Source: Paragordius varius (lineage: Eukaryota > Animalia > Nematomorpha). Taken from it: a DNA stretch of 64,000 nucleotides. The position numbers and the translations under genes are program-made. The notes beneath the pieces were generated by a model. The model was not told the DNA's origin, ran no database searches, and saw only the letters and a list, made by a program, of their open reading frames with translations. The stretch covers positions 1,674,001 through 1,738,000 of the forward strand of contig OZ176059.1 in NCBI GenBank assembly GCA_964247055.1, in the 5' to 3' direction. Positions 6,121 to 60,448 of this stretch are shown piece after piece. Numbering within the stretch: position 1 is the first letter of the stretch; the number at the start of each line of letters is the position of its first letter.

Positions 6121-6175
<55 letters not shown>

Positions 6176-9113: not shown

Positions 9114-10423
9114 GGTTATAATCAATAAAAAATGTTATTTATTGTTTTTCAGAGTTCGATATTGTAATTTTAACAACATAAATTGAGAGCCTATTATGTA
9201 CTATGTTAAACCTCTCTTTCCTTTTTTTATTGTGTTTTACATCACTAAGACAATAAAATTATTGGGTATTATTTTTTTATTAATTGTTGAATACACCATT
9301 AAAATATAAATTATAGAGAGAAATATTATTATTATTATTATATTATTATTATTATGAGAATATTAAACCTTACAAAATATATATAGGTAATTAAACATGA
9401 GCAGAAAAAAATAAATCTAAAAATTAACCATTTTGATGTACAAATGCATACTGTAAAAATATATATTCGTTTGGCCTAAAAATAATAAAATAGTTAAGGG
9501 TTTCTGGAACAAACGTTATGGTATAAAAAATAGGTTGCTTTAATTATATATATATATATATTAAAATATGGGGGGGGGGGAGGGGGGGGGAAACTGTTTA
9601 ATTGCTAGCTTTTGTTGTTTTTTACCATATACACTACTGTATTATAGTGTGTTTTTGACAACTTTACAATAATACCAAATGCAATATAAATAACTGAATG
9701 TGTGCCAGGTTAAGAGACTTCGATTTATTTAAAATTTGATATTGTTAATTAATACTAAAGAGTGCGGTTTGAAAAATGATGCGTGTTGTTTGGTATAGTC
9801 CCATTTCCGATTGCTAATAAGTGTTGTTGTGAAAAAAAATGTCTGCCAAGGTATTATTTTGCAAATGTCCCCCAGGCATATTTTTATATAAAGTTAACGT
9901 TCTAACATGATGCCATAGAATTTTTTAAGGCACGAATAGAATCTTTAAGTAGCTATACTCTAATCTACGGTTAAACCTAATGTTAATTTTCAGTTTATTT
10001 TTAAAATTTTAGTTTAATTTTCATGAATGTCAATAAAATTTAATTTAGATTCGTATAACCGAAAGCATAAAAGTTGGATATATATACGAATTCGATATGT
10101 GAAAACCCCAAGTCAAATAGTTGTGTCGTACTGATGAATGCTAACAAGCACGAAAGTGGTCTGCGATTACTATTGACGAAAGGCTTTCACATAGCGTTTA
10201 TAATTTCTGTTAATAAAAAAAACTTTCAATTGATTTCATATTTAATTTTCGTTTTTTATTATCTTACGGATTTAACAACTGTTAATACAGACAATGTTTG
10301 TCTAAAATCTTCGGAGAGTAATACCAAAACATATTTAAAAATCTCCCTCCTGTCGTGTTGTAACAATTGATTATGGGCCTCGAGTGATTTTTTACACAAT
10401 TGTACATTCATCCCATACAATTA

Positions 10424-10776
10424 TACCATTTACAGTTCAAATTCACTCTTGAACAATTCAAATTCACCCTCGAACAACGCAAATTCACCCTCGAACAATG
10501 CAAATTCACCCATATACAATTCAAATTCGCCCTAAAAATAAATTATGTGTTTTCGAACTGATAAAACTCATTATTAATATAAAATATATCTTTATCGTAT
10601 ATTCTATTATTTTTTTCAGTACTATTTTAATTTAAAACAAAATTTTATTTTTTAAAAACATAAAAAAATATAGGTAATTTTTAATCTTAAAAATATATAA
10701 TTTATTTGAGGGTGAATTTGAATTGTTCAAGGGTGAATTTGAATTGTTTAAGGTTGAATTTGAATTGTAAATGGTA
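10424..10776. mobile_element. MITE family A inserted in the Helitron helicase remnant, TA TSD
   Basis: ta|TACCATTTAC...GTAAATGGTA|ta; removing the element plus one TA restores the frame KVLQQCNI-IVWDECT. Confidence 0.9.
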
Positions 10777-11259
10777 TATATTACATTGTTGCAAAACCTT
10801 CCCTATGTCAGATGATTTTGACACATTACACATAATATCTTCATGACGCATATTTAATGGCAATTTAAGAGCAGAATGAGCCGTCCTTCCTCCGGATAAT
10901 AAGGTAGAAACTATCTCAGAAAAAGCTATAGCCAAAGCTATTTTTTTACTTCTGACAGTTGCCAATATAAACTTCAAAGGAAATGTTTTACCGGTGTCCG
11001 CCCTGGTGCATCCAAAAAATATATCCCACCAACATCATTAGAAATATCTCGCATAATTTTATCGTATATTATCTTCTGTTATTGTGTTAGTTTGGATAAA
11101 TTACAATTTTGATAGGATATAAACTCAAATTCATTAAAACTTTGTTCACGACGAATCTCTATATTATATGGAAATTCAGCATTCGATTTGGAGATGGAAT
11201 TATCAGTAGGCTAAGAGGCCGGTTTGATATCTCTAGACAAATGTCCTTAACTCAATTTC

Positions 11260-12120
11260 TACATAGTGGCGCAGTTTTTGCCGGGTAACGTGTTACCCAA
11301 GAGCAGGTATAAAAAAGCGTTGGGAAAAATTTTTGCCTTTATATGGGGAATATCTGGAATTATCATAGATTACATATTTTGCTATAAGTTCTTGGAAATA
11401 TTGCTTTAAAACTTAAAAAGTGTTCTATGGCGGCGCATTTTGCAGGACGTAAAATTTTACTTAGCGTCTCATAAAAATGACCCCCTATACTAAAATATTT
11501 GTTTTTTAAGGGGTATTAAATTTTTAGGCCCTTATTTAACTCACATAGTCTCATAGGTTTCTGAAATTCGACTCCAAAGACATGCTGTATATGGTGCTGC
11601 AGTTTTACACGGGTAGCCCTTTAACCAGGGGCGAAACAAAAACGCCCGACTAAAATTTTGCCTTAATTCGGGTAATACTTGTAATCATTATTAATTCCAT
11701 ATGCTCTGGTGGGATTTTCGAAAAATTGCTTCAATAAGTTATTCTATGGTGGCGCATTTTTCAGGGCAAGCGCTTAATTAAGGGGTAATTTAAAAAACCG
11801 CTCTACTTAAATTTTTGCCTTGGGTAATATTTCAAGCCCTTATTAAACTAATATATGGCCTGATAAGTTTTTTAAAATTGCTTCGAAAGTCACGCTGTAT
11901 CGATATGGCGGCGCAGTTGTAGGCGGGTAGCCCCCTACACAACGGCCAATAAAAAAATACCTTTGATAAAAATTTTTGCCTTTGGGATACCTTGAATCAT
12001 CATTCATTCCATATATTCTTAATAGTTTTTGGAAGAATGGCTTCAAAAATAAATATTAGTTCAATGATAGCGCATTTTTTAAGGCGTAAAGGGCCTAATG
12101 GCTAATTTAAACAAACCGCT
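11260..12120. repeat. Degenerate tandem array of six ~160-bp units, alternating A/B types
   Basis: Core G(G)CGCA(G/T)TTT at 11268, 11432, 11596, 11751, 11910 and 12069 (spacing 155-164). Odd units continue GCAG...GGGTA(A/G)C; even units continue GCATTTT. Confidence 0.7.
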
Positions 12121-13110
12121 CGAGTGAACTGGGGGCCTAATTCAAAAAAAGGGCAAAGCTATTGTCAGGGCATTCATTAATTATTATATTTTTTCCACAT
12201 TTGAATTCGAATAGGTCTACCGTTTTTCCGGAAACATATCACAAAGCCAGCATTTTACATTTTTATAAATATATAGATTATAAAGTGAGGAATATATAAT
12301 TTAGTTTTGAGATAAAAGAACTATATAAAACTGTTTTGTCGCCTTTTTTAAACCTTATATTAAATTATTGGGTGTAATTCCACGATTAAATTAAATTTAA
12401 CAATGATCAACAACAGAACATTGGTTAAATTTGCAATATTTTTTCATTCACCATGCGCTTCTAAACCGTTTATATGTTGTATAAAATTTTGACTTCATGT
12501 TACATAAAAAGAATAAAAGTTATTTTTTATGAACCTATTTTACATTTTAATAAGTGGGTGCATAATGTTTATGCGCCCGAATTTATAAAATATTTTCAAT
12601 ATATTCCATATTTCATATAATATTAGATTTCTTAGAGGTCTGGCTGGGGTCGTCACCTACCCAACGACTTGAGAGTATTTAATATAAACTTTTTTGTTCT
12701 ATAAAACTTAATGAATTTAATAAATTATTTGACAGACACTAAGGTTTATTAAAACTGTAAGCTATTTCGTAAAAATATTTCATCTACTGTCATTTATATG
12801 TTAGCCTGAATGTTTTAAAGGTAACAGAGTGTAAAATGAAAATTTTTATGCTTTATAAAAATATTTTCGTTTCACCGATCGTTAACATACAGTAAAATTG
12901 GAATCATACTAACAAAACTTAAAAACTAAAAGAAACATTAATATATTTTAGTTTTAAATTTTTTTAAATGTGACTCATCGTGAAAGATATAAAGATGTAA
13001 ATTTGTAATACGCTCAAATTATCATTAACACATCAAATCCATTACCCTTAAACATTTTAAATTCCGATATAAAAATAAAATGTCTTTTTGAAAAATAATT
13101 CTTATATTTA

Positions 13111-33370: not shown

Positions 33371-36300
33371 CTTTTTCTTCAATACATGATAACAATGTTT
33401 GATAAATAATCAAGTATTTCGCGAAATTAAGCATGGGGTATAAAAATATACCAATATGTAAACTATGATAAACAATAAAAAAGGTAAATTTTTAATATAA
33501 ATACTTTCAATACCATTTTTTTATTTATCAAAAATTGATTCTAATCTTTTTAAAAAGGTGGTATAAAAATTTATATTAAAAATAAAGTAAATTTTATTGA
33601 TAATACTAATCTGTTCTCTAAAATATATAGAAATATTAAAAAATATGTAATGGAGATTTATTTAAACCCTAAAGTAAAGCTTTTTATCATTAAAAATAAG
33701 CTAATGTGACTGGGTCATTTATTTATTAACCACTTAGGTTTCCCCTAATTTAAATGGCTGAAACACGTGTCCGAATCTGCGATACATATTTTTCAGAAAA
33801 CAAACCTGATCATAGATAATAGGTTTTTATAATTGATTTGCGGATAGTTAAAAGATAACGACGGAACCAGTTTTGTATTAGCCCCTAAGTTTAGTGCCTG
33901 CCATGGGAAAAGTTTTAGATCAATATGGCTTTGTAGCAAATTTTCTAGAAAGCGGTGGGTACATTTAAATTTAAAGGAATTTCTTTTATATGCCCAGGCT
34001 ATTTTTAAATGTCCTTAGTCCCATCCTCCGAATAACAAAAGAGATTCGTAGACTTTTCCGGTAAAGGGCAGGACCATTTAAATTAAATAGAAATTTTTTA
34101 TTTATTTATAGATGTACCAAGGGTGATTCAGCTATTATTTAAAAAAGAGCCTTAGTACCCTCTGACTCCCCTAAAAATATTTTAAACAAATATTGGTTTT
34201 AAAATAATTTATAGAGAAGGTGTGGGCTTATGCCAATTTTAGTTTTTTATTCAAATTAACTAAGCTGACAGCACAGTTTTTTGCATTTATTTCTTCAATT
34301 CAGACCCATCCTTGGGAAAGTGTGGTTTATTAATACTGTATTTAAAGCCATATTCTAGAGACGGTGTAGGGATCATTTAATGATGAATTTTCTATTTTTT
34401 AGAAATGTGCAAAGGGTAACTGGGTCGTTTTTTGAATTTGTCTCTCAATTAAGCGCCGCTTGTGTGGACATGGGGTTTTAATAATAGGCTGCTATTTTAA
34501 GGAAAAAGTTGCGGCTCATTGTATATTTTAATTTACACAGGATTCTCATAGAGCCTTTAGTTTTGGGTCTCACTAGTAAATTGAAAGAATTATTTCCATG
34601 ATGATATTTATTTTTTATATAAAACTTAAACATAAGCGAAGACTACACAAGTTATATAAAAAATATTTTGATATAATATATTTATTTTGATAGAAGTCTT
34701 ATGACAACTGATCCATAGCCGTTGCAAAATTAGCTAATATTATTTTGAAATTTTTGGTGGAAGCAAAACACTTTATTCCAAAAAATAATAACCAAAAAAT
34801 ATGTTAAAGGCACCAAAAGTCTCAAATTTTTGGCTCACTATAAAAAGCTAGTTTTCTCACATGAGAACCGAGATTGCGCGATACAATTTTTAATTTTTGT
34901 TAAATTATGACAGCAGTTACTAATTTATGAAAACAATACATATTTTGCTAAAAATTTAGTGGCAAATTTGTAGCACATTCGATGGTATCTTGAGGCTAAT
35001 GGAAACTTTATAAACACTTAAAGATAATAAAAAGCATCTTATCTATACAATTTGAAGATTATTAGCACCTCAGATTTTTGATTTTCATTACCTTTTCACT
35101 TTTTTGTTCTAGTTTACCTTTGGGTATTTATACCTCAGAGCTCAATTTTATAAATAAACTTTTGAAACTTTTTTAAGTTGAAATTAATTTCAAATAATAT
35201 TCTCTGTTTTAGATAAAAAAGCTTATATTTTTAACACTGACTTCTTGAGTCAATTGGTACAGCTCCAAAACACGATTAATACTAACAGGTTATATTCAAA
35301 TCGGAATATATTAAATTTTGCTGGCTTAAAATTAGTTATTTATATTTTCTAACCAATGTATCCATTTATTACCTGTTGCATTAGCGATTTGAAAAAATTA
35401 TAGGGAAGAAAAATGACGGAGAAAAGTTTAAAATAAGGTGTAATTTACAATTGTACATTTTTTTAGAAAAATTTGTATAATGCTCCTTAAGATAAAGGCA
35501 TAATTTTAAATTCGACTTAATACCTATATTTTTAAAGATATATAAATTTTTATCGCTCTTGGTTATAATACCACCCCAAAAGGTTATGGAGTGTTAAATT
35601 AAATCTCGAAAATTTTAAAAATTTAATTTATATTCACATGAATTCGAAAATCGATTTTTAATCGAAATCTTCGCCAGTATTTTAAAGATACTGATATAAA
35701 AATTTGTTTTGTAACGTTTTGACCATGCTTTAGAATACCAAAAAATACGCTTTAACAAAATTTTACTTAAATATAATTAAAATATGGTTTTTTAAAGTAA
35801 TTTATCAAAAAATTATAATAATGCCGGCATTATTGTCTGTGTTAAAAAACTATTATTTAGGAGTTTTTGACCTTATAAAAAATTAATAATATTGTTTTCC
35901 TTATTAAATATATTTTTTATTATCTATTGAGAAGCAATTTTGGTTTAAACACTTTAGTTTTCTAAAAATAAATTGATATAACGGGCGTTAATTTAGCGAA
36001 TATTTGATAATGAGCCAATACCACAAAGTCGAAAAACCCTCTTAAATAAATAACTCGTAACTAAAGCATCAGAAGAATTATATAATTTTTTATCAAATAA
36101 AAATTTTTGTTTTTAAGTTCTATCTTTCATTATCTAAAACAAATTTTTATATTTTGTAACCAAAAAAATTATCTCAACTTTCTCGTATATATATATATCA
36201 ATTCCGTTTCGGATGGTTTTAAAGTAGCGATTTATTGGTGTAAAGCTAACTTAGTCAAGAACCGATTTAAAGATTAAAAATTATTAATATTGTATAAATT

Positions 36301-39118
36301 GGTTGTTGATAATAGAATGTTTGTAAGTCGTTGCAATAAAATTTTCACAATGCGTTTATGAATATCCATCGTCTTTCTATATAAATGGTATACAAAGATT
36401 AATATTTTCAAATAAATATGATTTTTCCAAAATTATATTACACTACCCACTACCTTTTATTGCACTGAGCGACAAAAACGGGGATAAAACAATAATTGCA
36501 TATAAATCATATATCGTAACGATATCGAAATGATGAATGCGGGTTACCTAAAAATGTTATTTTTAATTTTTTGGCTATTAAGCCAAAATAATCATAGCAT
36601 TTTCATCGCAGATTGGGTTGAATAAAATACAATAGAGGAAAATGCGTTTCTGATGTTTGTATATATTGTAAATAAATAATAATTAATATAAATTTTTCGA
36701 GAAAGTAAGCTAAAATATGGTGGTACTCTGAGATCACATAACTATTTAATATATAAGGTGCGCAAAAATATTAATGTTTAAGCATTTTAGCTAAAAGGTT
36801 GATGATAATTATCGAAACGATAAGCATTTGAGATGCTAGAAAACAAGTATTATTTTAATTTTTCCTCAAAATTGGAAAATCTAGCGCGTCAAATTTTATT
36901 TATTAATGGGTATCATAAGAAAAAGGAGACTATTAGCGATAAAGATTGTAAATTTTTTCAATTCATTTAAAGATTTATAAGAATTAGAGCTAAAAATATA
37001 TATTTTGGTAACAAATTGGAATAAAAAAACTTGCTTTTATGCAGTAAAAGATTTTAATTATCATTTTAACTATAAATAATATACATTTTCTATGATTAAA
37101 TAAATTTACCCAATATAACGCGTTTAAAAAGTGATCTAAGCCCTATACAAAAAACTATCAATAATATGTAACAAAGCGGAAGTAGCGTATAAATTACAAC
37201 CTCATTAAAATTATAAACAATATTTACAATTCGATGAAAGGACATATATAATCTCAATTTTTCATTTGATGAATTTTCAGAAATTGTCAAATATTTTGGC
37301 GCCATTTAAATTTTGATCTCCCAGCTTTTGGGCATAACCTTAAATCAAAAAACTCGATCTTCGGATCAAATTTTGTAATAAAAATTTATAATATATATGT
37401 TAAGAATTGATTAAATAATATTAGAACTTCTCGCTTTGGTGCAAATCATCGAAAAATGTTAATATGAAGCATAGAGCTTTTTGTAAACGCAATATATCGG
37501 GTTAACATGTTCAATGTTACATAAATAGCTAAAATAAAGATTTTGTTCTTTTACAGCAAAATAGCGAGCCATTTATTATTTGACTAAATTTTAGTTCTTT
37601 TAAATCCTTAAATAATCTTTTAAAATAATCTTGGTATTTTTTGTATAAAATTTTATGACACTTTTAACAAATTTAGTTGACCTAATGTGAGAAAAAAATG
37701 AGATTTTTTATTTTGGTTAATAGCAGAATTTATTTTTTCAAGTGTGTTAATATTATCATCTCGATATTTTATAATATAAACATTTATTTAACCGTATTTT
37801 TGCCGCAAAATAATTGCCCAATATTTCGCGCTCAAAAAATAATTTCAATATAATGTAGAAAAAGTATTTAAAAATTTGCACTAAAGCAGAATAGGTTATA
37901 TTATCCCCATAATATTTGATGCACAACTCGATCTGATATAGGATTTTTATGTCCAAAATCAAGTTTGATTGCCTAGGGGGCCATTTTAGATTTTGATCTC
38001 GGCTGAGCACAAAAACTTCATAAATAAAAAAACCTATTTAAGTTATTCCGCATCAAATATTTCAAAATGTTTAATTCACATATATTGATGATTGAAATTA
38101 AACGCTATAAACTGGATTAATCATTATCCCGAAGGTCTTACATCAAGCGATATAGTTATTTTTTTGTACAGTGTATATTTTTATTGACATTTGGTACTGC
38201 ATTAGGGTTACTTAATGGTTAATGTTTTGCAAATTTTTCAATTCTATTGTTTTAGGACGATAGCCAATAGTATATATATGTCAAACTGGGAAAATTAAAG
38301 TTGAATTGACAAACAAAAAGGTTGTCTATAAATATAGAATGGACTTTGCAGAACATGCTTGGAACAGGGTGTCCAACACCCTTTGGCGCAAAAAGAAAGT
38401 AAAAAATTGGATTTAAATGAAAAATTTACGATGATTTAGAAGAGATTGAGCTTATAATAAATAAAAAATAACTAAAATTATCAAAGAGGTCCGGGAAGAC
38501 ATTTGTATTGAACACCCCGTGCCTTAAAATTGCATTAACAAAAAATAAAATCATAAAGGAATTCCTAAAATTATTTTAAAAACAATACCCTAAATAGAGA
38601 TGATGGATATATCATAACATGAAAATTTTATGACAATAATATACGCTTATTTTATTTATTTAATTTTATAAAATATGCGTAAATAGAAACCATATATTAA
38701 TAAATTTTTATTTTTGGAGATTTTAAACGCAGAGAGATTAATTCATTTTTAATAATTTGATGAGGATTCCCTGATGGAATCGAAACTAGCCATTAAGAGT
38801 TGAATATAAATCAGGTCAGCATCTGTCTCGATTCAAATCGGGGTAATTGACGACGCTAGACTTTTTCAATTTTAATAAAAAACAAGCATAAATAAGAGTA
38901 GGGACCGGCCTTAGTAGTTATTTAAAATAATTCAATACAAGATAATAGAGTCACTATGTCCCCCAATCTGAATCGAAGTATTAAGGATAAAATATAATAA
39001 ATTTATTTAACAACGAGAGCATTTAACATTTATTAATATCAGAATCAAAAAATTCAACAAGTTTGTTTTGATGTGTAAAATAATTTTGAAAGCTTCCTTG
39101 CTTGTGAAAAGAAAACAA

Positions 39119-39223
<105 letters not shown>

Positions 39224-39289
39224 TTAAATGACATTAATTTAGTACAAAACTTAAATTTCGATTTAAAAAATATAAGGAAACGTAATTAC

Positions 39290-39381
39290 CCCCAATAATG
39301 TCTCAAACCACGATGGCAATGAATCTTTTTCAATCTTTCCAAGTCCTCACGCAATTTATTATCCAAATTGTTGGACAAAAG
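39290..39381 (-). CDS. RPS18: 40S ribosomal protein S18, exon 4
   Basis: [30 protein letters not shown]; aaatag| acceptor and |gtaatt donor. Confidence 0.97.
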
Positions 39382-39393
39382 CTATTTGTAGTA

Positions 39394-39425
<32 letters not shown>

Positions 39426-39457
39426 TCGAATTAGGGTAATTTTTAAAATTGACATAC

Positions 39458-39559
39458 CTGAGTATCCTTTCCATCCTTAATATCCTTCTGACGATTGAGA
39501 AACCATACAGGGATTTTGTAATCCTTAGGGTTTTGCATTACATTCATAATCTTGTCGAC
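39458..39559 (-). CDS. RPS18: 40S ribosomal protein S18, exon 3
   Basis: [34 protein letters not shown]; attcag| acceptor and |gtatgt donor. Confidence 0.97.
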
Positions 39560-39733
39560 CTGAATAGAGGACGTACACAAACATCAGGAATATATATTTC
39601 ATAATAGTAAAAGCACAATATGTATGTATCGCAGAATTGATAACCAAATTTTGCTTGTGAGATAGATGAAGTATAATAATATGAGTGATGAAAAATGTTT
39701 AAATATATAGGGTATTAGTAGCTTGGTAAGTAT

Positions 39734-40014
39734 AAAACGATGAGGAAAATAAAATAAAAACAGCAGGATGATGAGACAATAGCTAACTAGAGGTTATGTA
39801 TTTTTAAACATTGTCTAAAACTTTTTTGATCTTCAACCGGTACATAAATCTGTTTACACTTGTTACCGCTGGTGTTTACAGTAGTTACCTTTATTAATAC
39901 CAATAATAATTTAGCATCAAAAAAGTTTTAACCACTATGAATTAGCAATGTTAAAAAATACATAACCTCTAGTTAGTTATAGTTTCAACATCCTGCTGTT
40001 TTTATCATCGTTTT
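39734..40014. repeat. Long imperfect inverted repeat (MITE-like) between the frizzled stop and RPS18 exon 3
   Basis: Arms ~39734-39830 and ~39916-40014 (AAAACGATGA...TAAAAACAGCAGGATG...CTAACTAGAGGTTATGTATTTTT.AACATTG...TAAAACTTTTTTGAT). Confidence 0.85.
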
Positions 40015-40116
40015 GATAATTCGTAATTACTATCTTGTTCTTTTTATAGCTACCAAACTATTGACGCCTTATATTTATCATATTAAACTCATATTATCTT
40101 CATCGTGATTTAATTA

Positions 40117-42834
40117 CTATACAATTTTTGGCATGGGTACAACTGAGGGGTGAATACCACCAATGTTATGATCAAAAGAAACTGTGTCATTTAATAGGGC
40201 GGCACCCTGTTCGCTGTGATTAAATAGAGTAACACCTCCGCCCTCCATCATAATGGGGCCAGCAGGTGTTAAGGCACGGGGAGTGAAACAACAAAATCGG
40301 CGTAAAACGTTTGATATGAGAGTAGGAAAATTTAAAGGACCTTTATTATTATTATTATTGTCAATGATTTGGTCATCAGCATCATTGCTAAAATAATCAT
40401 TTGGTTCATTGTTGTAGGGTTTTTTGAAAGAACAAAAATATCGCCAGGAGGAAAGTGTTTTAGCTGACCAAACCCAAAAACCTGATGATATACCCGCCAC
40501 AAAACACATGAGATACTTGGTTGCAAAAATGATAAAACTTGGACGCTCCTGATATTCATTGTATAAATGTGTAAAATATATGGCATGAGGGTGTTCTAAA
40601 GGTAAAATGGATGCATATGGACACGATGAAGCAGCGAAGTATGGGTTTGATAAAATCTTTAATTGAGAGCCCTTAGAGCCAATTTTGAATGGCGGTGAGA
40701 AATGGTCCGATGAAAACAGGGCCGATTTACCCAACAAAAAATCTGTCGCACGGTTATCTGGTTGAATTGGTGAACAGACACGATTAATCCACCACCAAGC
40801 CGTCCATCTGTCATACCTTAAGCGCTGATAGAAAACACAAGCAAGGTAAATTATAGCTGGAAACATGTATAAACAAGAAAATATTCCAATCCGTATCATG
40901 AGTTTTTCCAATCGGTCCGTTTTAGCACCATCATTTTTCATAGCTTGACGTATGCGGAATACACTAATGAACCCGGCTAGCAAAAAAGTTATCCCGCAAA
41001 CCATGTACACAAGGATTGGTATAAGTAAAAAATATTTAGCAGCATCCATATCAGTCAAACCTATGAAACAAACACCAGAGAGTGGATCACCTTCGACCCG
41101 ATGCACAGCTATAGCGGCAATAGTTTTGATGAGTGGAGCCGTCCAAGCTGCTGTATGAAAATATTTTGAGTAGGCACCAATAGCTTCCTGGCTCCATTTT
41201 AGGCCTGCGGCAAGGAACCAGCTTAGAGCCAAAACCACCCACCACATGTGAGCAGACATAGTGGCAAAGTAAAGGATTGCAAATGTCGCAACACAACCTG
41301 TGCGTCGCGATTTAGTTGGCAGCAAACTATTTTGTGCCGTTGAATAATTATTATGATGCATAGTCGCACCCGTGCCCAAGGAAGAAATATCGGTTAATCC
41401 ACGATTTATAATTTTTATATCGCCCAACAAAGAGTAAGGAAAATTGGCCGCGGCTTGCTTAACACCAAAGGGGGAAGAATGATCCATATCATGAATGCTT
41501 TTAAAAGTTATCCCACCAAGTGTTGATGAAGCATACAGAGATTCACATGACAATCGCTGGTCCAAAAATATACCACATACATATATGAGTGAAACAATAA
41601 AATAACAACCGGCAAGATATATAATCGGTTTTTCCGGATACCGAAAACGACTTTTATCAATAAAATACGTCAATAGGGTAAAAAGGGTAGAGAAGAGGCA
41701 TAATGTTGCCCAACACGTTATCCAGACACGAGAAAACCGTTGTTCTTCCAATGTAAAAAACCATGCAGTAGGTTCACAGGGTGTAGCGCAATTGGGAACA
41801 GGATACCCTGCTATATTTAAAATATATTTGTGACTTAAATCATGTTTATAACCTTCATGATATGTCCTCAGCACAGGTGGACAGGCAAAGGGATACACGG
41901 GTGCTGGGGCAACACCGGTTTTATATAAAGGGACGCTAGATTTTTGATTGTTATGCAGTTCATCTGGTTTGAATGGTAAAATTTTGTCAACCTTGTCCTG
42001 ATTAACATGATGCTTTTCCGCACCAATATTATTGGTAAATACATTAAGGGAAGATGGTGGTACAAATTTAGAATCGGTCGGGCCCATTTTATCTTTACCA
42101 TCGTGGTCTGAGGAGGCGTGGACAAATAAATTTGTATCAACTTTTGGACCACCCATTTGCCGAGAAATACTTTCTGTTCCCGCCGTAATAGAGGGAACTG
42201 GCTTTTTGTTTTTGTTGTTTGATGTGCCATAAGTATTACCGATATGGCTATCATCATCGTCGTCAGATTGAGTAACATTTTGGCCAACACAAAGTTCACC
42301 TGAACGCGGAAATTTTTCACAGTTAAACCCGGATGGCCAATAAAAATTGAATTCCATCATGAGCTTTTCGCAACCATTCTTGGCTGAGTAACACAGCGAT
42401 CGGCACGGGGGTATAGGTCTGTCCATTATAGTGCACACGGGAACGTATATGGAGCATAGAAACAGATTTAGATCAGGACTGCATTGTACCTTAACCAGGG
42501 GAAAAAATTGATTGGCCTCTAACCCGGCCTCTTCTTGTGTAGCATGACCCTTAAGGTTAGGCATAATTGTCATATTGTATTGTATACCCTGGCACAATGG
42601 TAATGTAATGGGTTGACACTTGTCATTCTTAATGGCTAAATTATTATTACTATTAATGTTGTGGTTGGCTGATGGTGAGTTTTGATTTCCCGTAAGTGAT
42701 GATGATGATGATTGTTGGGAGGCAAAAAGCATTTCAGCTTTGTATAATGTATCAATCGTAAACAAATAAAACAGGACGGTATAATAAAAAGTGTAGTGGG
42801 AATATGTTGATACAAGTTTATACGAGGGAATCAT
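40117..42834 (-). CDS. fz: Frizzled-1/2/7-type Wnt receptor, single coding exon, 905 aa
   Basis: N-terminal hydrophobic stretch; 10-Cys CRD ([33 protein letters not shown]...[18 protein letters not shown], close to Drosophila Fz); 7TM core ([42 protein letters not shown]); KTxxxW motif KTLSSW. Confidence 0.96.
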
Positions 42835-43480
42835 TGTGAAAGGTGATTCAGAAAATCTTAAAGAGAATCAATCCAATAACTTAATTTTTTTCAATTTGGA
42901 AACGTAATGGATTGTATGAATTAAATGGTTATTTTTATAAAAAATATAGCGAATAAACAGGATTATAGTTAGAAGTAATTGCTGTTAAGGATATATATTG
43001 ATTTATGTGTGAAAGCTTTTTTTTCATCTACTGCAATTATCCAAAGAATAGTAGGAATGAAAAAAATATAATGCTGATCCTAGCTTTTTATTTCTCGTTT
43101 ATGTTTAGAAAGCATATGGGATTCAAAAAATTTTTGGACAAATATAATACATATGTGGCTGGAATTCAACAAAATTCAAAAAATATTTTTGGCAAAGTCA
43201 TAATATCCAAAATGACCATAAACAAGAAAATAACAAAATTCACATGTTTTTGGAAAAATATTATTTTGTGAAAAATATAATAAGCAGGAACAAACCTAAC
43301 AATAAAACGAATGTGTGTATGAGTGTTTACTAGTCTCCATGTAATAAAGCAAAAAAATGCACATAAACTAAACAAAAGAAAGAAGGGGGAGAGAAATGGC
43401 TATCTATATTGAATAGAGTATTAGTAAAAACAATGCAGATTAGGGGATACAAACAAATATGTAAACAATATAAAAAAATA

Positions 43481-43642
43481 CAGTAGCGTATGCAGTAAAA
43501 GATTGTTAGTGCAAAATAATCTTAATAGGGGGATATTATGGATAAGTTTATAAATAGGACTTTAATATATGAAAATTGTCCCCTTGTTTTGTGTTTATTA
43601 AGATTAGTTTGCACTAACAATCTTTTACTGCATACGCCACTG
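43481..43642. mobile_element. 162-bp MITE with TA TSD
   Basis: ta|CAGTAGCGTATGCAGTAAAAGATTGTTAGTGCAAA ... TTTGCACTAACAATCTTTTACTGCATACGCCACTG|ta. Confidence 0.85.
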
Positions 43643-45565
43643 TATATAATTACAAAAGAAATGTAAACTAATTACACTTAAGGGTGTAAAAATCAATGCA
43701 GAGTTAAAATATATTACCAGCTCAAACAGTATAAAATTGAGCTTTAATATATTGTTACCACTTTTAACATGGGCACCTAAAAATCTAAGTTTAAGAATCA
43801 TATATCATTCAATAGCTTTTCCCAATAATGAAATGTAAATGAGGTTAAGGAACTAGAAAAAAAATAATTCTAATTTTTCTAACATTGGCCAAAATGAATA
43901 AATCGCATTTTTGTCTCATATTGGGACGAAATAGAATAGAGAAGTGACAATGGAATCCTATTTATTAATATATAACAAAGATTATCCTAAACGCAAAATA
44001 TTATCAATAAAGATTATCAATTTTTTAAAGGTCCTTGAGGGACTAAGAATCAGAGCTAAAAAATTGCATTCATGTTATGCTTTAAAAGTATGTAATTTTC
44101 ATTTTAACCGTTATATATTTTTATTACACCGAATATATCGCGTTCCATTCAATATATATCATAAATATCCCAAAAGTTCGACTCACTTTATGATTTGGGA
44201 AATTTTTATGCCCAAGCCGGTAGATATAGCTAAAATGTTATTAAAACGCTCAATTACAACTTGGGGTAAAAAAACACTAAATTTAAAAACTGAGTCAGTA
44301 AATCTTTTTTATAAATTTCCACTTTAAAGCAGGTTATTATATAATTTCTTTTATAAGAGTTAAGTCATTTTTGGAATGCGATATATTTAAACTCTAATTA
44401 TATATTTAATAATGGAAGTTAGCCAAAGTCCAATTTTATATCTTTAATTCCTGTAAATCCCTCAAGATCCAAAAGAATCGTATCTTTATCAATATTTTGT
44501 GTCTAGAAATCTCCTTAAAATTTCGTTAACGCGTTTATTTATTTATTGTATTTAATTTATTCAACATAATGTGGAAAAATGCGATTTTTTTGATTAATAT
44601 TAATCAATTTAAAATTTTTGTCTAGAATTCTAACCGCCAATTTAATTTAGGTTTTTATCCGTAAGCTTTGAGCTATCGAATGATATTAGATTCATAAACG
44701 TGCAGCGTAATGGGAAATGAATGAAAAAATAAACTAGGTTTACATAAAAAAGTCAAGCAAAGATGTGGTATTTTTTTGTAGTTATATAGCTTTATGTTGG
44801 AGTAATACACACTTTTAAACTCGCCTCAAAACTTTTTTATCTTTAACAAATACTATTTTACCAAGAATGCATGGTATTAATATATGAGTCAGCCCCTGCA
44901 TTAAATCCCTGGTAATTATACCAGGGCCTTAAATGTCTATTTTTAGAATGTGTATTAATTATATACATTTGCACATGTGTTGAACAGGTATGCCATATTG
45001 GTGGGCATTATATGGTGTAAAGGCTCTTGTAACAATATATTATTTGGTGCTATAATTTTTTTGGTGATAACCAGTATTTCCAAAAGATCTAGCACAAAGT
45101 TTGAAAAAAGGAATTTGAAACGGATGGAAAACAATGTCATGTGGTGCTTATATATATAGCATAGCCTAATTACAGTCGCGATGAACGATATAATTATCGT
45201 GAAAAGTAAATTTTTCAACATTACACACTCGATTTCTCCGTATAATTAAAAATATTTGTAATGTAAATTCAAACGTACCATTTACAAATTAAAACTTGGC
45301 TTCCATTTAACAAAGTATTTATTGTAATCGATTAAAATATATTAGATATGCATAAAATCGGACAAATGCTAAAAATTCCCCAAAAAATAATTTTTAATAA
45401 GATAACCATATACAGAACTAAAAAATATTAGGGATAAGACTAATAGGACTACGCTACTCAATTGTAGATGTCATAATTTAATTCAACTTATTGCTTATAA
45501 TAACTAAATAAAATGTATAATTAAAATTTTAGGTAATTATAAAGGTATGTACAATATAAAGTTAC

Positions 45566-45652
45566 TTCTTCATTAGTCAACTCTCCAGCACGCTTAGATA
45601 AATCTACACCAGCTTTTTTGCAAACTATTGTAGAAAATCTACGGCCCATACC
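45566..45652 (-). CDS. RPS18: 40S ribosomal protein S18, exon 2
   Basis: [29 protein letters not shown]; donor |gtaact. Confidence 0.96.
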
Positions 45653-45675
45653 CTAAATTTTATAATTCGCAATAC

Positions 45676-45777
45676 TTTTATTGAGGTTAATGCATACATA
45701 ATCTTTACTTTACCATCAATATTTGTGTTCATCAATCGCAAAATATGCTGAAATTTTTCAGGTAAAATTAGGGACAT
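45676..45777 (-). CDS. RPS18: 40S ribosomal protein S18, exon 1
   Basis: [34 protein letters not shown]; the five exons join to an uninterrupted 153-aa uS13. Confidence 0.96.
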
Positions 45778-45812
45778 GCTGAAGGCTTATACGTATGGGA
45801 AACGGTGCTTTT

Positions 45813-45819
45813 GAGAAAG
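45813..45819 (-). promoter_or_regulatory. Candidate 5' TOP/TCT-type start site of RPS18
   Basis: CTTTCTC 42 nt upstream of the ATG. C-initiated pyrimidine tracts are typical of ribosomal protein transcription starts; position here is inferred only. Confidence 0.4.
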
Positions 45820-47205
45820 TGTGAACAGATGATATATTATTTTAAAATATTTGCATTTTAGGCATTATACTAATAACAGCATTCTTTTAATTTTACATAT
45901 TCAAAAATTTACAATTAAACTATTCTTTTATTATATATTTACCAATAATAGTTTGGAGCCTTATTCTGTACCATTTATCTTGAATAAATATCCAAAGAGT
46001 ATTTTAGCCAAAAATAATAAATTACTTTGCAAATCAATTTAAAATTTCTAATTAAAACCCTTTATTGAAAATATTTATTGCCAAATTTTGCTGTTAGATA
46101 ACCAGTTGTTTGGGTTAGAATTTTATATTTTAACCGCAATCTCTTTCAGTAAAATAAGAATATTATGGTGCTTTTAGTTTGGCGAGTGGTATAAGAAAGT
46201 TATTGTCACTTTTGTGGCAATCGCTCGATGTAAGAAAGTTTTTGGTAAAAGCTCAATGATCCGAAAAAATTATAAATATATTATTTCAAAAATTACACCA
46301 TTTATGTTTTGGTGTTGGACTCTCTTTAGAATGAGCTTTCGATTGCTAAAATGCTAGAAATTCGGAAAATCCTATTAATATATCCATATTTAATATCAAA
46401 AAATATATTTAAAAAAATTATTTTGTTGAAACTTTAATTTTTAAAATTTAATTACCGATTCCTTTTATATTGGGTGGGGTGATAAAAAAGTCGCACTTGA
46501 CTTGTAAGCCAAGCGTGGCAAGTTGAGCAAGATTACTTAAGCCAGTAAGTGTACACTTGAAGATCGGTGATTAAAAAACACTTAAGTTAAGTTTTTTGCT
46601 TATGAATGTAACTTTTTTTACCACCCAATTCAAACTATGCGGGGAATGTTTTGAAATTTTACAACGAAAATTTATAGATTAAGGTAACAAAGAATAAACA
46701 CCCAATACAATATGCATTTATTGAATTACTCAAAGTTACTTATGTTAAAATAAAATATATTAAGATTTTTTCAAATATTCAACTTTATACCTATAGTTTT
46801 TAAGAAACCATTCGCCCTTCAAACACTCTTATAATATTATACTACAAGTTTAACATAATACAGGTATAATACATATAAAATTTTAGATTATATCTTAATT
46901 AATTATTTTAAGCAACATTAGTCTCACTAAATAACAATTGCGCTAAAACAATTTAACAAAGGTATATTTGAGGGCAGGTGATATCTGTAAAAATACAATT
47001 TAAATTCAAGTAAAAATATTTGTATAATTATATAGATTGTTAAACGTTAATAAACGTATCTACTTTGATAGGAAGCACCCTGAACAACTTTTGTCATTAA
47101 TCCTGTATATCTAATTAAAGTTAATTTATTTTTAAAAATACATATATAACCTTTTAGATTATAGATTTTAAAAAATATCCTTCTATTTGTTATCTGATTA
47201 CAGAA

Positions 47206-48131
47206 ATGTACATGAACAATTTCAAAAACAAATCGGAGCGCAAAAAAATAGAGTTGCAACATATGAAACGTTTGTTAAAATTTAATGATGAAAGCATCGA
47301 TTTTATAACTTCACAAATTTTCCCTAATGATATTATTAAAAAAAGAGGCGGCGCACTATCACCTAGATGTTGTGTGGAGATTTTCCTCCGTTACATTATC
47401 GGCCCCGGATTTCAGAGTGGTGTTGCTAATGATTTTGGTGTAGAACGATCAACCGTAACTAAAACAGTATCCAAAGTAGCGGAAAATTTTTTTGACATTG
47501 CTCATAAATGGATCCGATTTTCATCTGACCAGTTTCAACTAGAAGACGCTAAACAATGTTGGCAAAAGAATCATAAGATGCCAACAGTTATCGGTGCCAT
47601 AGACTGTACTCATATCGACATCATGAGGCCTAAGGAATTTGGTGACGAATATATTAACCGAAAAGGCCGTTATAGCCTTAATTGTCAATTTACCTGTGAC
47701 GGTGATGAATTTATAACGAGTTTAAACGTTAAAATGCCGGGAAGCGTTGATGATAGCCGGATTTTCCGCAAAAGTATAAAGGTTCCTTTTTAGCCAATAC
47801 CAATGCGGCACTATTGGGTGACAGTGGGTATAAAATTACTCTATATGTAATAACACCATTTAAAAACCCTAACAACCTTTTACAAACGAAGTTTAATACA
47901 TTCCATGCTAGAGAAAGAATAGTCATTGAAAGGCTATTTGGTCAACTCAAACGCAGGTTTTTCATATTGCATAATGAAATGCGAGTCCATTTGGATACCG
48001 CAGTAAATATTATTGTAAGCTGCGCCGTTCTACATAACATGGCTAAATTTTTAAAGGATGATTTTGATATAGATGATGTAATATCAATTGATTTAGATAA
48101 TATTAAAAACGATGATGATTGCGAAGATTAA
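47206..48131 (+). pseudogene. Harbinger (HARBI1-like, DDE_Tnp_4) transposase, frameshifted near 47790
   Basis: VIGAIDCTHIDI, YINRKGRYSLNCQ, PGSVDDSRIF, then in another frame LGDSGY...FNTFHARERIVIERLFGQLKRRF...CAVLHN. Confidence 0.9.
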
Positions 48132-48328
48132 GACAATATGGATAGTGCTTTGACAGACGAAAGAATCTCAGGTCAACAAAAAAGAGATAACATTGTAATG
48201 TATTAAAAGCATTAAATTTATTATAAATATATTTGCTAAAAATATTGATTCGTATGGATTATATATATATATATATTAATTACATTTTAATATTGGATTG
48301 CATTTTGAAAAGTTATAATAAATTTATT

Positions 48329-49267
48329 TCATGAATTAAAATTATTGAGTTTATGTTTCTCCAGCAGTAAAACTTCTTTCTGAAGCAGTAATACTTCATA
48401 ATGAAGCTCCAAAACTTTAAATTGCATATTGGCTATAGTATTTTGGGACACCTTTTCTGATTCTTTATATATTTTTTTATTTGTAGTTGGTCGCGGCACG
48501 GATGTACCTATAATATAAATTAAAATTGACATTTTTATTACGTCTATACCTTTAATATCGAGATTAAAAAAATCAAAGTTACAATTGTAGTATAAATGTA
48601 TAAATATATGGATGATGTCTTACAAGGAATATCATCGGCAATCGTAACGATACCACATTCTTTACCACCAGGAACATTAATATGCACTGGATTATGTTCG
48701 TAATCCATAATATCCAACATAACCTTCTCATGGGGTAATAACACAATTTTTTTATTACCTATGTAAATAGGTAGATAAGGATTTCAACTAAAAATAATAT
48801 TAACCGAGACTTAGGTGTTTTTATATTTTTTGTGAATGAAATCACGTTTTGTGATGTTAAAAATTTCGAACATTCTTGCTAATTATTATTAACTTTGTAT
48901 TAAAAATACCCCTTAGCATATTTCCTAAGTCATAAAAAATAATGGGCATAGTGAAATTGCCTTGATTATGATAAAAAAGGGTAAGCCCGTTATAAATAAT
49001 ACCTGTTTGACGAATATCCATCTTCTTCTTAAGAGTTGTTTTGATATTTTGCGACATTTTTTTCAATTGAGAAATATTATTATCTTCCCCAGTGTCCATC
49101 ACGAATTCCTGGTGTATGTCTCTCCATTCTGCTTCACGTTTTGCTTTTGATTTTGGGAGGACTTTTGCAAATACAATGGGATATCTATTAAACATAGGTT
49201 AGGAATAAAAATATAATAAATTTAAAATTTACTTTTTTAGAATTTCCACTAACTTATCTCTATTCAT
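48329..49267 (-). CDS. Harbinger Myb/SANT-like DNA-binding protein (spliced; may be decayed)
   Basis: ATG at 49267; a 48-nt intron (49232-49185) gives MNRDKLVEILKKYPIVFAK...AEWRDIHQEF...QLKKMSQNIKTTLKKK. Further exon-like frames at ~48720-48620 and ~48510-48329 end in a coiled coil (LELHYEVLLLQKEVLLLEK). Confidence 0.7.
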
Positions 49268-56297: not shown

Positions 56298-57472
56298 TCA
56301 TTTATAATTAGTTTTGGGGCTTGACAGTTTCTTAGTTTTACCATGAGTGCTTGTGGTTAGAAAAGATGTGCAAGGAGTAACGGTACTGCTTGCACATGTT
56401 TTCGTTACCGCAAGCGTGGTTGTAGGACGATGTATTAGGGCATCATTCACGAATGCCAATACATTGTCGTACGGAGACCAGTATTGAGGCTGGTAAAACG
56501 CTAAACTCCGAAGGGGTATATCCAACGTTTCAGCCATCTCATCCGTCGTGTAAGATGGGGCACAACATGTGCTATTAATAGATGTACTAGTTTGAGTATT
56601 TGTTTTGTTAGCGGATCTAACATTCTTATGGCTCAGAGTGGTACTCAATGTATTACCTCCTAATGTAGATGTTCCCGTAAATACAATTTTTCCAGCTTTG
56701 GGTAAAACAAATGTCGAATTCGTGTTATTACTACCGGTGCTAACGGGATAACGCAGTTGCGGAACAGATGGCATCGCCAAATTTGTCAACGTTTTGTTTG
56801 TCGTGTCATATAAAAATGTGCTATGGTAGTTAGAATTAGGGTAAGATTTGTTCGCTCCTGGTAACAATGGAATTGTGTGTAAGGAAGAAAGTTTTGCGGG
56901 TGGTTTATTTTCATTCATAATATTGTGGTGACTATTGTAATAGGGATAATAATTATATGATGATGACGCAGTTGTTGAAGGCGGAAATAGCGTAGCGTTT
57001 TGTTGCAATTGTTGCTGTTGTTTTTGTTGTAAAATCATGTAATTATGTTGCCAATGTTGGGTAAGTCGTGACAGGGTGGGATGTTCAAAGGGATGATGGG
57101 CTTGGACCGAAGAAACTAAACCGTCAACAGGATTATTAGTGGTTAAAACGATGTCACTCCTCGTGGTGCTCATACTATTAAAGGGTAATGGGAAGTAGGT
57201 GCTATTACCATAAGAAAAACTCGGTGGAGACGAATTTGGATTCGAGATATTTGTTGAAGTGCTATTGCTGGTTGTTGTTGTTGTCAGACTAAAACACGCT
57301 AGGGCACTCAAAACGTTGGCATCCTGTGTAACAGGACATGAACCATTATTGTAACGATAAACGTAAACGCGAAAATCTTTGCTAGCAACAACGACAGAAT
57401 CCTCGGCTAGTATGGCGACATCAAAGCACTGTGCATGTTTGACTTTGCTCTCCAATGCATCCAACAAATTAC
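56298..57472 (-). CDS. brat: Brat-type TRIM-NHL protein, exon 2 (last NHL blade plus long low-complexity tail)
   Basis: Acceptor tgttag|GT; LLDALESKVKHAQCFDVAILAEDSVVVASKDFRVYVYRY matches the Brat C-terminal blade; the frame stays open to TGA at 56298. Confidence 0.9.
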
Positions 57473-57828
57473 CTAACATTAGTAAAAAAATAAATACATT
57501 GACACAAAGGAGAGAAAGAAAACGGTGAACGCATGGCAAAATTTGATAAATCAATTTTAATCACGATTTTTAAGCGAATTAATACAAAAAATTTGTCAAA
57601 TGAATATGCATTTGAATCAGTTTTCGTGTTATACCATTATGATGAAAAGGATTTTAATTATGATTAACAAATGATAAAGTAATATGGGGGCTTTATTGTG
57701 ACTTATGGCATATAATTATTGACTAAAACGAAATTCAATAAGTCAATATAAAGTAATTATTAACAATTTAATTTAAACCGCGTAAGTTTTAAACCCTAAA
57801 TTAATAAGAAAAAAAATATTAATTTTAC

Positions 57829-60448
57829 CTTGTTGATCAAATATTGTGAGATTGAAATTATTGTGATTATCAGCAACTATTAGACGACCCGTATAGTACT
57901 CAATGCCAACTCCTATGGGGTAATTAGTAAGTCCTGGTGCACCAATTTGTCGCAAATATTGGCCAGTGTAATCAAACACTTTAACACTGTGGGCCCGATT
58001 ATCACTGATAAAAATCTCCTGTTTATTGTTGACTGCCAAACCGTTTGGGAATTCAAGGTGTTTAGAGCAACCAAATTTGTGCACAACATCCCCTGTCCTG
58101 CTATCAAATATAACCACTCGCATCACCTTGCATTCCACAATGACAACTTTGGCATCATCGTCAACCGCTACGCCCCGCGGATGTTGCAAGATATCGGCCC
58201 CAAATTTCCGAACAAATTGGCCCGTTTTGGTGAAAATTTGGATTTGATGGGTTGGACTTCGTTCTGTAACGACAATATCACCGCTAGCTCGAACCGTCGC
58301 CACACGATTAGGGTAAAGTAATTGGCCATCACGTTTCCCACACTCACCAAACTGGTACTTAAAACGGCCTTCACGGTCAAAAATTTGGATTCTATGGTTA
58401 TTAGTATCAGCAACGATAATGTCACCTTGTGCGTTAACTGTTACACCACTAGGCTCTGTAAATTGACCATCAAGCAATCCAAACTCCCCAAATTTGCTGT
58501 GATAAATCATTTTTCTACGTTTAATTTGAACATTTGGAGGTTTAACATCAACATCCAGGTTGTTGGTACAATAGGCATCGCCCTCCACTGTAGCCGCATT
58601 TTTTAAGCTGTTAGATGGGTTATCAAGGTTAGCTGAAAGGGATGGTGGGAGAAAACAAAAATTTTCACCATTAAATATCGGTGGATTGGGATACGCATTT
58701 AACATTGCTAAAGTATCGCTTTTTATCAGTTGATCACCCAAAATAGTTGAGGGAGAACACACTTTTATATTACCAGTAGTGTGGTCTTGACTATTGAAAG
58801 AAGTTGTACCATTTAATAAGCAGTTCCTTTTAGCATCATTACTTAACTCGAGCGTGATCCCATACGTTGACGAATCATTATTTTGTATCCAAAATTTTTG
58901 TAGCAAACGATCATGCCGTGACGTCTCAAAACACATGTTATCTTTAACATGTCCAAAGGCATTCTTAACAACATTCGGTATGGCTGGTGAATAGGTTATA
59001 AATTCAATATCATAATTTAGTATATGTTGGGCAACAAGATCAGGTGATACATAAAGAATCCAAGCTACATCAGAAGTAAGAAGAGGTTTAAGCTTTTCCA
59101 TAGCTTCATTCATCATATCCTCGTTCTTGCCATTAACATCATGATTGTTAAGAGATAAGTTTGTGGTTCCATTATTGTTGTTGGTAGAAGTAACATTATT
59201 TATTTCAACTGAATTTAGCGATGATTTGCCAACATAGTGTACAAAGTCTTTAGACCGCTTCGAGAGTTCACGCAACTTTTGACTGATTTGGGCCAGCTTT
59301 GCATGCTTTGTCACATAAGATGATTCAATCTCCTTCAACACATCACTCTTCCGGGCTTCAATGGCATTGTGAAAACTCATAGTGGCATCCCCAACATCCC
59401 TTTTAGCTTGTAGGTATTGACCATTCAATTGATTTGTCGTTTTCTCCACATTTTTCAAAATGATATCATACTCAAGCAGACGGTTATTGATAACGTCAAT
59501 GGCTGCCTTAGATTTATCGTCTGAGCTACTAATATTATTACCTATTGTGTTAATTATTACATCATTTGTTGAATTTGATGAATTGATATTGTGATCTTTG
59601 TTAACATAACCGCCGTTTGAAATGAGTGATGACACCTCGGTATTCAAGGTTTGTTGTTGTTTTACGGTAGGATTATTTGGTAAAGATGGCACGTTTAAGG
59701 CGATACCGTCATGACCTGCTCGTAAATGTTCGTTAGCAAAACAGAGTGGACACTCTATGACAATGTTACAAGTATTACAATAATGCCTATAGGATTCATT
59801 TTGTACTGGGTGCTTTGGACATTTGCCCGTTGGTGGCGTGCTAAATTGCGATGATGATACTTTTTCAAGTTTTTCAGCATCGTTTGAGGTAATAATGTTA
59901 TTATCTAGGGAAGTTGATGATATACCATCAGTACTTATATTATCATCCATATCATGATGAGGAAAATCGCTATTGTGTGGCCTATTATTGCCGTTGTAAA
60001 AAAAGGATTGCCATAGTGCTTTAGTCATTAAGGCTTGAAAACCACCCTTCTCCGTAAATATGGGAGTTGTTTGATGACAAATTGGACAAATGATTAAGGA
60101 TGATTTATTATTATTATGGCCAATAAAAAAATCTTGTGGGCCAGATGAGTGTGCTTCAAGGCAAATCGAGCATAATTGATGAAAACAAGATAGTATACGA
60201 ATATGATTTGGATCGGTTTCTAAAGAGCTATTTTCTTCAACATTACAACCTGGACATTTCCATTTAGTGGCGATGATTTGATGGTCTGCCAACTTTTCAC
60301 CGTTATTTTTAACATAATCGTAAAAATCTTCAGTTTTACCTAATATATATAACATAAACTGTATACTTGTCGAATTAGCTAAGCTGTTAATAGTGTCTCC
60401 ACACCAAAGAAGCAACTTGCTGTTTGAATTAATGGCACTGGAGGTCAT
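57829..60448 (-). CDS. brat: Brat-type TRIM-NHL protein, exon 1 (RING, B-box, coiled coil, NHL repeats)
   Basis: KRRKMIYHSKFGEFGLLDGQFTEPSGV...VTERSPTHQIQIF...VECKVMRVVIF...ADNHNNFNLTIF is Brat/NCL-1-specific. Donor CAAG|gtaaaa at 57828 and a 356-nt intron give a 1264-aa spliced product. Confidence 0.93.

Follow-up and report, generated by a model that had tools for sequence, protein, structure and literature searches.

A frizzled gene in the second intron of RPS18

We analysed a stretch of 64,000 nucleotides (nt) from the genome of the horsehair worm Paragordius varius (Nematomorpha; assembly GCA_964247055.1, contig OZ176059.1, positions 1,674,001 to 1,738,000 of the forward strand), hereafter the window, in which a gene for ribosomal protein S18 (RPS18, or uS13) holds a complete frizzled (fz) gene within one of its introns. 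Coordinates are given as positions of the whole stretch, and the exons of RPS18 are numbered along its minus strand (Table 1). RPS18 is built from five minus-strand exons of 102, 87, 102, 92, and 79 nt, separated by introns of 23, 6006, 76, and 92 nt, and all four introns begin with GT and end with AG. Taken in order, the translations of the five exons span the Pfam domain Ribosomal_S13 from end to end and give a protein of 153 amino acids (aa), which has 137 residues identical to uS13 of a second horsehair worm, Gordionus sp., and 115-123 identical to the proteins of other animals. Removal of the 23-nt intron 1 is required for an intact reading frame, and the open frames around the RPS18 exons reach at most 56 aa in the window and at most 63 aa in Gordionus. 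Searches with RPS18 were run exon by exon, or with an alignment of the exon rows and one database protein, and the exons were joined locally only for translation and identity counts. A search of representative proteins with exon 3 returned mostly mis-spliced RPS18 models, one of which served as the scaffold row of the alignment.

The open reading frame (ORF) of fz lies wholly within intron 2, on the same strand as its host and without overlap with any exon. A preliminary description of the locus had placed the RPS18 exons, the 6006-nt intron, and the same-strand frizzled gene at coordinates that are exact to the base. The fz translation matches the Pfam domains Fz (E 2e-33) and Frizzled (E 1e-106), with the latter match broken into three stretches by inserts. 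When it is aligned with the Gordionus and Priapulus proteins, the ten cysteines of the cysteine-rich domain (CRD) are invariant (C73, C81, C118, C127, C134, C144, C148, C155, C172, and C182), the seven-transmembrane (7TM) core is conserved, and the KTxxxW motif that follows the last membrane helix is invariant as well (K792, T793, and W797). In Frizzled proteins, KTxxxW is the motif that binds Dishevelled. The named best matches in protein searches are frizzled-1, -2, and -7 and 'Frizzled1/2/7', and by these matches we class the nested gene as a Frizzled of the Fzd1/2/7 group. It resembles the Fzd1/2/7 genes of other animals in its ten-cysteine CRD, Frizzled 7TM core, and KTxxxW motif, and the Priapulus gene in consisting of a single exon. 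However, its product is much longer (905 aa, compared with about 570 aa) and carries lineage-specific inserts, partly common to Gordionus, in the linker, in an extracellular loop, and before transmembrane helix 7. Its tail ends in PKIV, which is not of the ETxV type, whereas the Priapulus protein ends in ETVV. A search of public assemblies for an exact match to the fz protein found none.

The 110-Mb genome contains only two loci with a Frizzled domain, and the search that found them gave no separate match for Smoothened. The second locus, on contig 4 (10398500-10404500), has one uninterrupted ORF of 896 aa at positions 1634-4324 of that stretch, with 28-40% identity to the nested fz. It is a distant paralogue, neither the parent nor the twin of the nested gene, which is the sole Fzd1/2/7-type Frizzled of the genome. 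The nested fz is intact and under purifying selection.

Each RPS18 exon was found once in the 110.6-Mb, 44-contig assembly, and no further family member was found. A compact paralogue that might supply the RPS18 mRNA in place of this gene, a possibility raised in the preliminary description, is thus missing from the assembly, and the sole copy is predicted to be the working one. As that description had also remarked, intron 2 stands apart from the other introns of the gene; it is an extreme length outlier in relation to the other compact ribosomal protein genes of this genome, with RPL3 and RPS3A each spanning only about 1 kb in total.

Table 1. The RPS18 gene of P. varius and the contents of its second intron, with positions in the window.
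Feature	Position	Strand	Description
RPS18 exon 1	45777-45676	-	102 nt, codons 1-34, from ATG; Ribosomal_S13 positions 1-21; 91% identity to Gordionus exon 1
RPS18 intron 1	45653-45675	-	23 nt, GT..AG; position after codon 34; Gordionus counterpart 37 nt
RPS18 exon 2	45652-45566	-	87 nt, codons 35-63; Ribosomal_S13 positions 22-50; 83% identity to Gordionus
RPS18 intron 2 (host intron)	39560-45565	-	6006 nt, phase 0; donor GTAACT; acceptor with pyrimidine tract and CAG
Exon 2 donor to fz ATG	42835-45565	-	2731 nt, 38 sense ATGs; unique DNA except one MITE
Palindromic MITE	43471-43652	.	57-nt inverted arms; at least 40 genomic copies, up to 98% identical; in fz 5' flank
Intronless Frizzled gene, Fzd1/2/7 type by named matches	42834-40117	-	905 aa and stop; inside RPS18 intron 2
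Stable hairpin	39754-40005	-	60-nt arms, 92% complementary; -110 kcal/mol, z -12.6; single genomic copy; between fz stop and exon 3
RPS18 exon 3	39559-39458	-	102 nt, codons 64-97; Ribosomal_S13 positions 51-83; 85% identity to Gordionus
RPS18 intron 3	39382-39457	-	76 nt; (TA)n run inside
RPS18 exon 4	39381-39290	-	92 nt; Ribosomal_S13 positions 85-113; 90% identity to Gordionus
RPS18 intron 4	39198-39289	-	92 nt, phase 2
RPS18 exon 5	39197-39119	-	79 nt including stop codon; Ribosomal_S13 positions 115-128; 100% identity to Gordionus
Candidate RPS18 poly(A) signal	39029-39034	-	AATAAA, 84 nt 3' of RPS18 stop codon

The same nest in Gordionus

The closest relative of the nested fz is the fz of Gordionus sp. 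(47% identity overall and 54% in the membrane part; 414 bits, compared with 318 for the next match), and no horsehair-worm fz or RPS18 protein beyond those of Gordionus was among the protein-search results. A check of synteny in a relative, which the preliminary description had proposed, shows that Gordionus holds the same RPS18/fz nest. At this locus (GCA_954871325.2, OX940783.2; positions in locus numbering), an annotated 153-aa Ribosomal_S13 gene extends from 8344 to 12784 (about 36,531,016-36,535,456 of OX940783.2), and fz lies inside it at 10001-12169 on the same strand. The RPS18 exons (8344-8445, 8483-8569, 12425-12526, 12570-12661, and 12706-12784) have the same five sizes as in the window, and the introns, of 37, 3855, 43, and 44 nt, fall at the same positions, with fz again in intron 2. 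The public Gordionus uS13 protein equals the five-exon model exactly, with exon 2 joined to exon 3 across fz; the annotation that supplies it consists of RNA-seq-trained and protein-hint predictions (BRAKER1/2, TSEBRA). The shared exon sizes, intron positions, and nested gene are far beyond chance.

Between the two species, the third codon positions of RPS18 are 44% identical and the proportion of synonymous differences (pS) is 0.86, which amounts to saturation. Because synonymous sites are saturated, the nest must be old, and the layout predates the split from Gordionus. Both halves of RPS18 and fz have been under purifying selection throughout the separation of the two species. Comparison of the introns, promoters, and 3' flanks of the two species gave no conserved non-coding blocks above shuffled controls, and in Gordionus the N-terminal extension of fz that precedes the annotated ATG is not conserved.

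The AATAAA downstream of the RPS18 stop codon is likely the poly(A) signal of the gene. Its distance from the stop codon is kept, at 84 nt in the window and 81 nt in Gordionus (at about 12866), while the sequence that flanks it is not conserved.

Age of the host intron and origin of the nest

In the mollusc Pomacea, codons 35-63 of RPS18 are encoded by an 87-nt exon, which is followed by the same phase-0 intron after codon 63. This shared position indicates that the host intron is ancient, in keeping with the view in the preliminary description that fz is nested in an old intron. In the anemone Exaiptasia, introns again follow codons 34 and 97, the first of which also occurs in Pomacea, and the phase-2 intron in codon 128 is common to Exaiptasia and Pomacea.

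The Priapulus orthologue of fz extends over 1821 nt and encodes 606 aa; it is thus a single exon, and it has no RPS18 gene within 10 kb. From this comparison, the nest is younger than the split from Priapulus and arose in the lineage that leads to horsehair worms. RPS18 and frizzled genes are presumably at separate loci in Drosophila, Caenorhabditis elegans, and vertebrates.

The intronless ORF had been read in the preliminary description as a sign of retroposition. This reading does not hold up, because the Priapulus orthologue is also single-exon, so that the intronless state is ancestral and uninformative on retroposition. A retrogene origin is not supported: the genome contains no intron-bearing parent or close source copy, and its only other fz is both divergent (28-40% identity) and itself intronless. 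Loss of introns relative to orthologues, a further mark of a retrocopy, is not seen either. No flanking direct repeats were found around fz, where AT-rich DNA and saturated divergence would erase poly(A) and target-site marks. Whether fz entered the intron by a DNA move or as a retrocopy can no longer be read from the locus.

At the 5' end of RPS18, both species have an AG with pyrimidines before it at 1-2 nt from the ATG, on its upstream side (TTCAG-C-ATG at 45778-45790 in the window and TTTTAG-TT-ATG at 8330-8343 in Gordionus), which could be the acceptor of an unseen intron in the 5' untranslated region or a trans-splice site. The RPS18 genes of Exaiptasia and Pomacea instead have an intron directly behind the ATG.

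Contents of intron 2

Apart from one 180-nt miniature inverted-repeat transposable element (MITE), intron 2 is single-copy DNA. The MITE lies in the 5' flank of fz, and its family looks recently active. The 2731-nt stretch between the exon 2 donor and the fz ATG is predicted to hold the promoter and regulatory DNA of fz; the corresponding stretch in Gordionus measures 1431 nt and contains 16 sense ATGs. Within 200 nt of the fz ATG, neither species has an acceptor with a strong pyrimidine tract. An Rfam scan of positions 36000-49000 found no small nucleolar RNA (snoRNA) or other family in intron 2, and its only match, to a microRNA at chance level, falls outside the intron.

On the other side of fz, 557 nt separate its stop codon from RPS18 exon 3 in the window and 255 nt in Gordionus. 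The window has an AATAAA 222 nt 3' of the fz stop codon (39895-39890), whereas Gordionus has only an ATTAAA, 18 nt 3' of the stop codon. Sense AATAAA hexamers are not depleted in intron 2, with 11 found and 6.6 expected in the window and 10 found and 5.8 expected in Gordionus, and pairing between the ends of the intron is not beyond chance (z -0.65 and -0.92).

The fz AATAAA lies inside a stable hairpin at 39754-40005. Gordionus also has a hairpin at this end of the gene (12140-12280 in locus numbering; -40.7 kcal/mol, z -8.0), which spans the fz stop codon and contains the ATTAAA, yet the two hairpins share no sequence similarity. Inverted repeats of at least 43 nt within 400 nt occur at about 16 loci in the window, or approximately one per 4 kb. 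Because palindromes are this common, it is plausible that the enclosure of a poly(A)-type hexamer by a 3' hairpin in both species is a coincidence. Several of the inverted-repeat loci in the window share a unit of the GGGTGAATTTGAATTGT type (5757-6123 and 10419-10778).

Transcription of RPS18 and fz

Judged on anatomy alone, RPS18 and fz are probably two separate transcription units, with the gene-bearing intron removed by ordinary cis-splicing. In this model, RNA polymerase II would transcribe both units: transcription of RPS18 would start just upstream of exon 1 and run through fz, the whole 6-kb intron would be spliced out, and the RPS18 mRNA would end at the AATAAA approximately 84 nt past its stop codon. 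The fz gene would have a promoter of its own, located in the 2.7 kb of unique DNA that precede the fz ATG; it would probably be transcribed at a far lower level and in particular tissues, and its transcript would end within the 557 nt upstream of RPS18 exon 3. Host transcripts would have to pass the fz poly(A) site, which may be weak or may be outrun by splicing; the same would go for approximately ten further AATAAA hexamers of the intron. The length of intron 2 would then be due only to the gene and its control DNA, with the gene-free introns of the genome having shrunk to 23-92 nt. The model is favoured by the room that unique DNA leaves for an fz promoter and by the ordinary splice sites of the host, and it fits an intron of mostly unique DNA, a single RPS18 gene, and ribosomal protein genes that are otherwise compact. 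None of the special devices that were looked for (anti-termination, a spliced leader, pairing of the intron ends, or depletion of poly(A) hexamers) was found.

Several points weigh against separate units. The promoter, transcription start, and poly(A) site of fz are all predictions from sequence, and no non-coding conservation that stands out from shuffled controls marks the promoter. The junction of exon 2 with exon 3 in the Gordionus annotation rests on RNA-seq or protein hints, the two kinds not being separable. In Gordionus, exon 3 begins only 255 nt past the fz stop codon and this interval contains a single ATTAAA, so that fz transcripts may run into RPS18 exons 3-5 there. Lastly, the genome of P. 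varius appears to have another nest of a related kind, in the gene for RPS11 on contig 3 (stretch 220000-229500), where a four-codon first exon encoding MADQ (4815-4826), a protein-kinase ORF of 507 aa (4897-6420), and exons with the S17 domain (7289-8143) follow one another on one strand. In both nests, an intronless gene lies in sense orientation within an intron of a ribosomal protein gene. The kinase ORF follows the first exon of RPS11 at a distance of 70 nt, which suggests promoter sharing and hints that such sharing is a habit of the lineage, whereas fz, in intron 2, begins 2.7 kb from the donor, a distance that leaves room for a promoter of its own.

The strongest rival explanation, which we nevertheless consider unlikely, is that a single RPS18 promoter serves both genes through alternative processing. 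Most transcripts would have intron 2 spliced out, and a minority would either be spliced from exon 1 or exon 2 to an acceptor close to the fz ATG or be cleaved and polyadenylated after fz, so that fz output would be tied to RPS18 transcription and the start of RPS18 would act as an upstream ORF. The RPS11 nest speaks in its favour: reading unspliced from the first exon of RPS11 would give an upstream ORF of 21 codons, whose end lies 16 nt ahead of the kinase ATG. At RPS18, the sequence TCTCTTTAAG, 22 nt upstream of the fz ATG, resembles an acceptor, and if it were joined to exon 2 the frame would stop after two codons. However, this acceptor-like sequence is weak and is absent in Gordionus. 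The fz gene lies 2731 nt behind exon 2 in the window and 1431 nt behind it in Gordionus, with 38 and 16 ATGs in between. So far downstream, and behind so many ATGs, fz is unlikely to be translated from transcripts that start at the host promoter. An upstream ORF of 63-65 codons is moreover poor for reinitiation, and a Wnt receptor would have no obvious need for ubiquitous transcription at the level of a ribosomal protein.

Far less probable is an operon-like arrangement, in which trans-splicing of a spliced leader to a site ahead of the fz ATG would release fz from the primary transcript of RPS18, in the manner of a downstream gene in a nematode operon. The idea draws on the position of Nematomorpha as the sister group of nematodes. 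Against it, the Rfam model of the SL1 leader (RF00198) gave no match, although the control was also without any match, and a leader of the rotifer type has no match in the genome. Upstream of the fz ATG there is no conserved trans-splice acceptor, and we found no literature that links spliced leaders with Nematomorpha.

It is harder still to credit that the two halves of RPS18 are transcribed separately and joined by trans-splicing of two pre-mRNAs. No transcript would then cross fz, which would remove the problem of interference, and trans-splicing between transcripts of protein-coding genes does occur in a few animals, as with mod(mdg4) in Drosophila and eri-6/7 in C. elegans. However, the halves of RPS18 are collinear, on the same strand, and bounded by an ordinary donor and acceptor. 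There is no promoter-like gap before exon 3, which in Gordionus follows the fz stop codon after only 255 nt, and in the mollusc the same intron position is that of an ordinary cis-spliced intron. Least probable of all is an artefact, with only the oddness of the arrangement to suggest it, whether a misassembly of two loci, the risk named in the preliminary description, or a pseudogene of RPS18 or fz: the independent Gordionus assembly has the same layout, positions 38000-47000 of the window contain no N bases and hence no assembly gaps, the RPS18 exons are single, and both ORFs are intact and constrained.

Relation to known nested genes

In mouse and human, nested pairs involve over a tenth of genes, favour long 5' introns, and show a slight bias to opposite orientation, with sense and antisense orientations being 'broadly similar' (PMC11694760). 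The statement in the preliminary description that nested genes are mostly antisense was therefore too strong. RPS18/fz resembles these mammalian pairs (Genome Res 2024, PMC11694760) as a complete gene within a long 5'-proximal intron, and its sense orientation is common there too. It differs from them in its tiny and presumably very highly transcribed host, in the 23-92 nt of the other host introns, in the compact 110-Mb genome around it, and in having been kept across saturated synonymous divergence. Premature polyadenylation of the host is documented as an interplay for some host/nested pairs (PMC11694760). In the work of Wood 2008 and Cowley 2012, both cited in PMC11694760, expression of imprinted nested genes is linked to premature polyadenylation of the host at sites that precede the nested gene. 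RPS18/fz shares with the imprinted pairs the position of a gene within a host intron. In contrast to those pairs, such truncation of a single-copy, essential RPS18 would reduce the supply of ribosomal protein, and the evidence does not support a retrogene origin of fz. The snoRNAs found in introns of ribosomal protein genes are, like fz, sense-strand passengers, but they are released from the intron after its excision and require neither a promoter nor a poly(A) site, whereas fz is a protein-coding gene of 2.7 kb.

The RPS18/fz pair is thus an unusually clean case of an already known host/nested pairing, and what is unusual in it is the compact single-copy ribosomal host, the presence of a 6-kb and a 23-nt intron in one gene, the deep conservation, and, with the nest at RPS11, the recurrence of such pairs in the lineage. 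Sense nesting is generally held to carry a cost, through transcriptional interference and premature polyadenylation, that is greatest for a heavily transcribed, single-copy, essential host. Here the pair has persisted through a very long period, in two genomes with other introns that rank among the shortest of animals. At 6.7 kb in P. varius and 4.4 kb in Gordionus, it offers a natural and compact test case of how polymerase and spliceosome pass a complete gene. For annotators of compact genomes, it is a reminder that a ribosomal protein gene may legitimately span another gene.

Along with the nest at RPS11, RPS18/fz may be a sign of a genome feature common to the horsehair worm lineage. We put forward as a tentative and rather doubtful extension that horsehair worms regularly place intronless genes in sense orientation within the introns of housekeeping genes, among them those for ribosomal proteins, as a conserved expression layout. 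In such a layout, the host promoter would feed both genes through a choice between splicing and retention with polyadenylation, or a hairpin at the 3' end of the nested gene, such as those seen in both species, would mask its poly(A) signal in host transcripts. If this is true, RPS18/fz would be one case of a lineage-wide system and not a lone accident. The published genome papers that we searched do not mention lineage-wide sense nesting in horsehair worm genomes.

Neighbouring genes

Just upstream of RPS18, the window contains remains of the Harbinger/PIF type, in the form of a truncated DDE_Tnp_4 ORF on the plus strand (47206-47793) and a Myb/SANT-like ORF on the minus strand (48857-49195). 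A DDE_Tnp_4 gene also lies upstream of RPS18 in Gordionus, and it has no similarity to the Harbinger-type ORF of the window. Farther along, a single-exon ORF of 891 aa with NHL repeats (57773-60448, minus strand) appears by eye to be rich in zinc fingers and TRIM-NHL-like. It is followed on its 3' side, on the same strand, by an ORF of 418 aa that is rich in Ser, Thr, and Asn and has no Pfam match (56298-57554). Large genes of this genome are often single exons.

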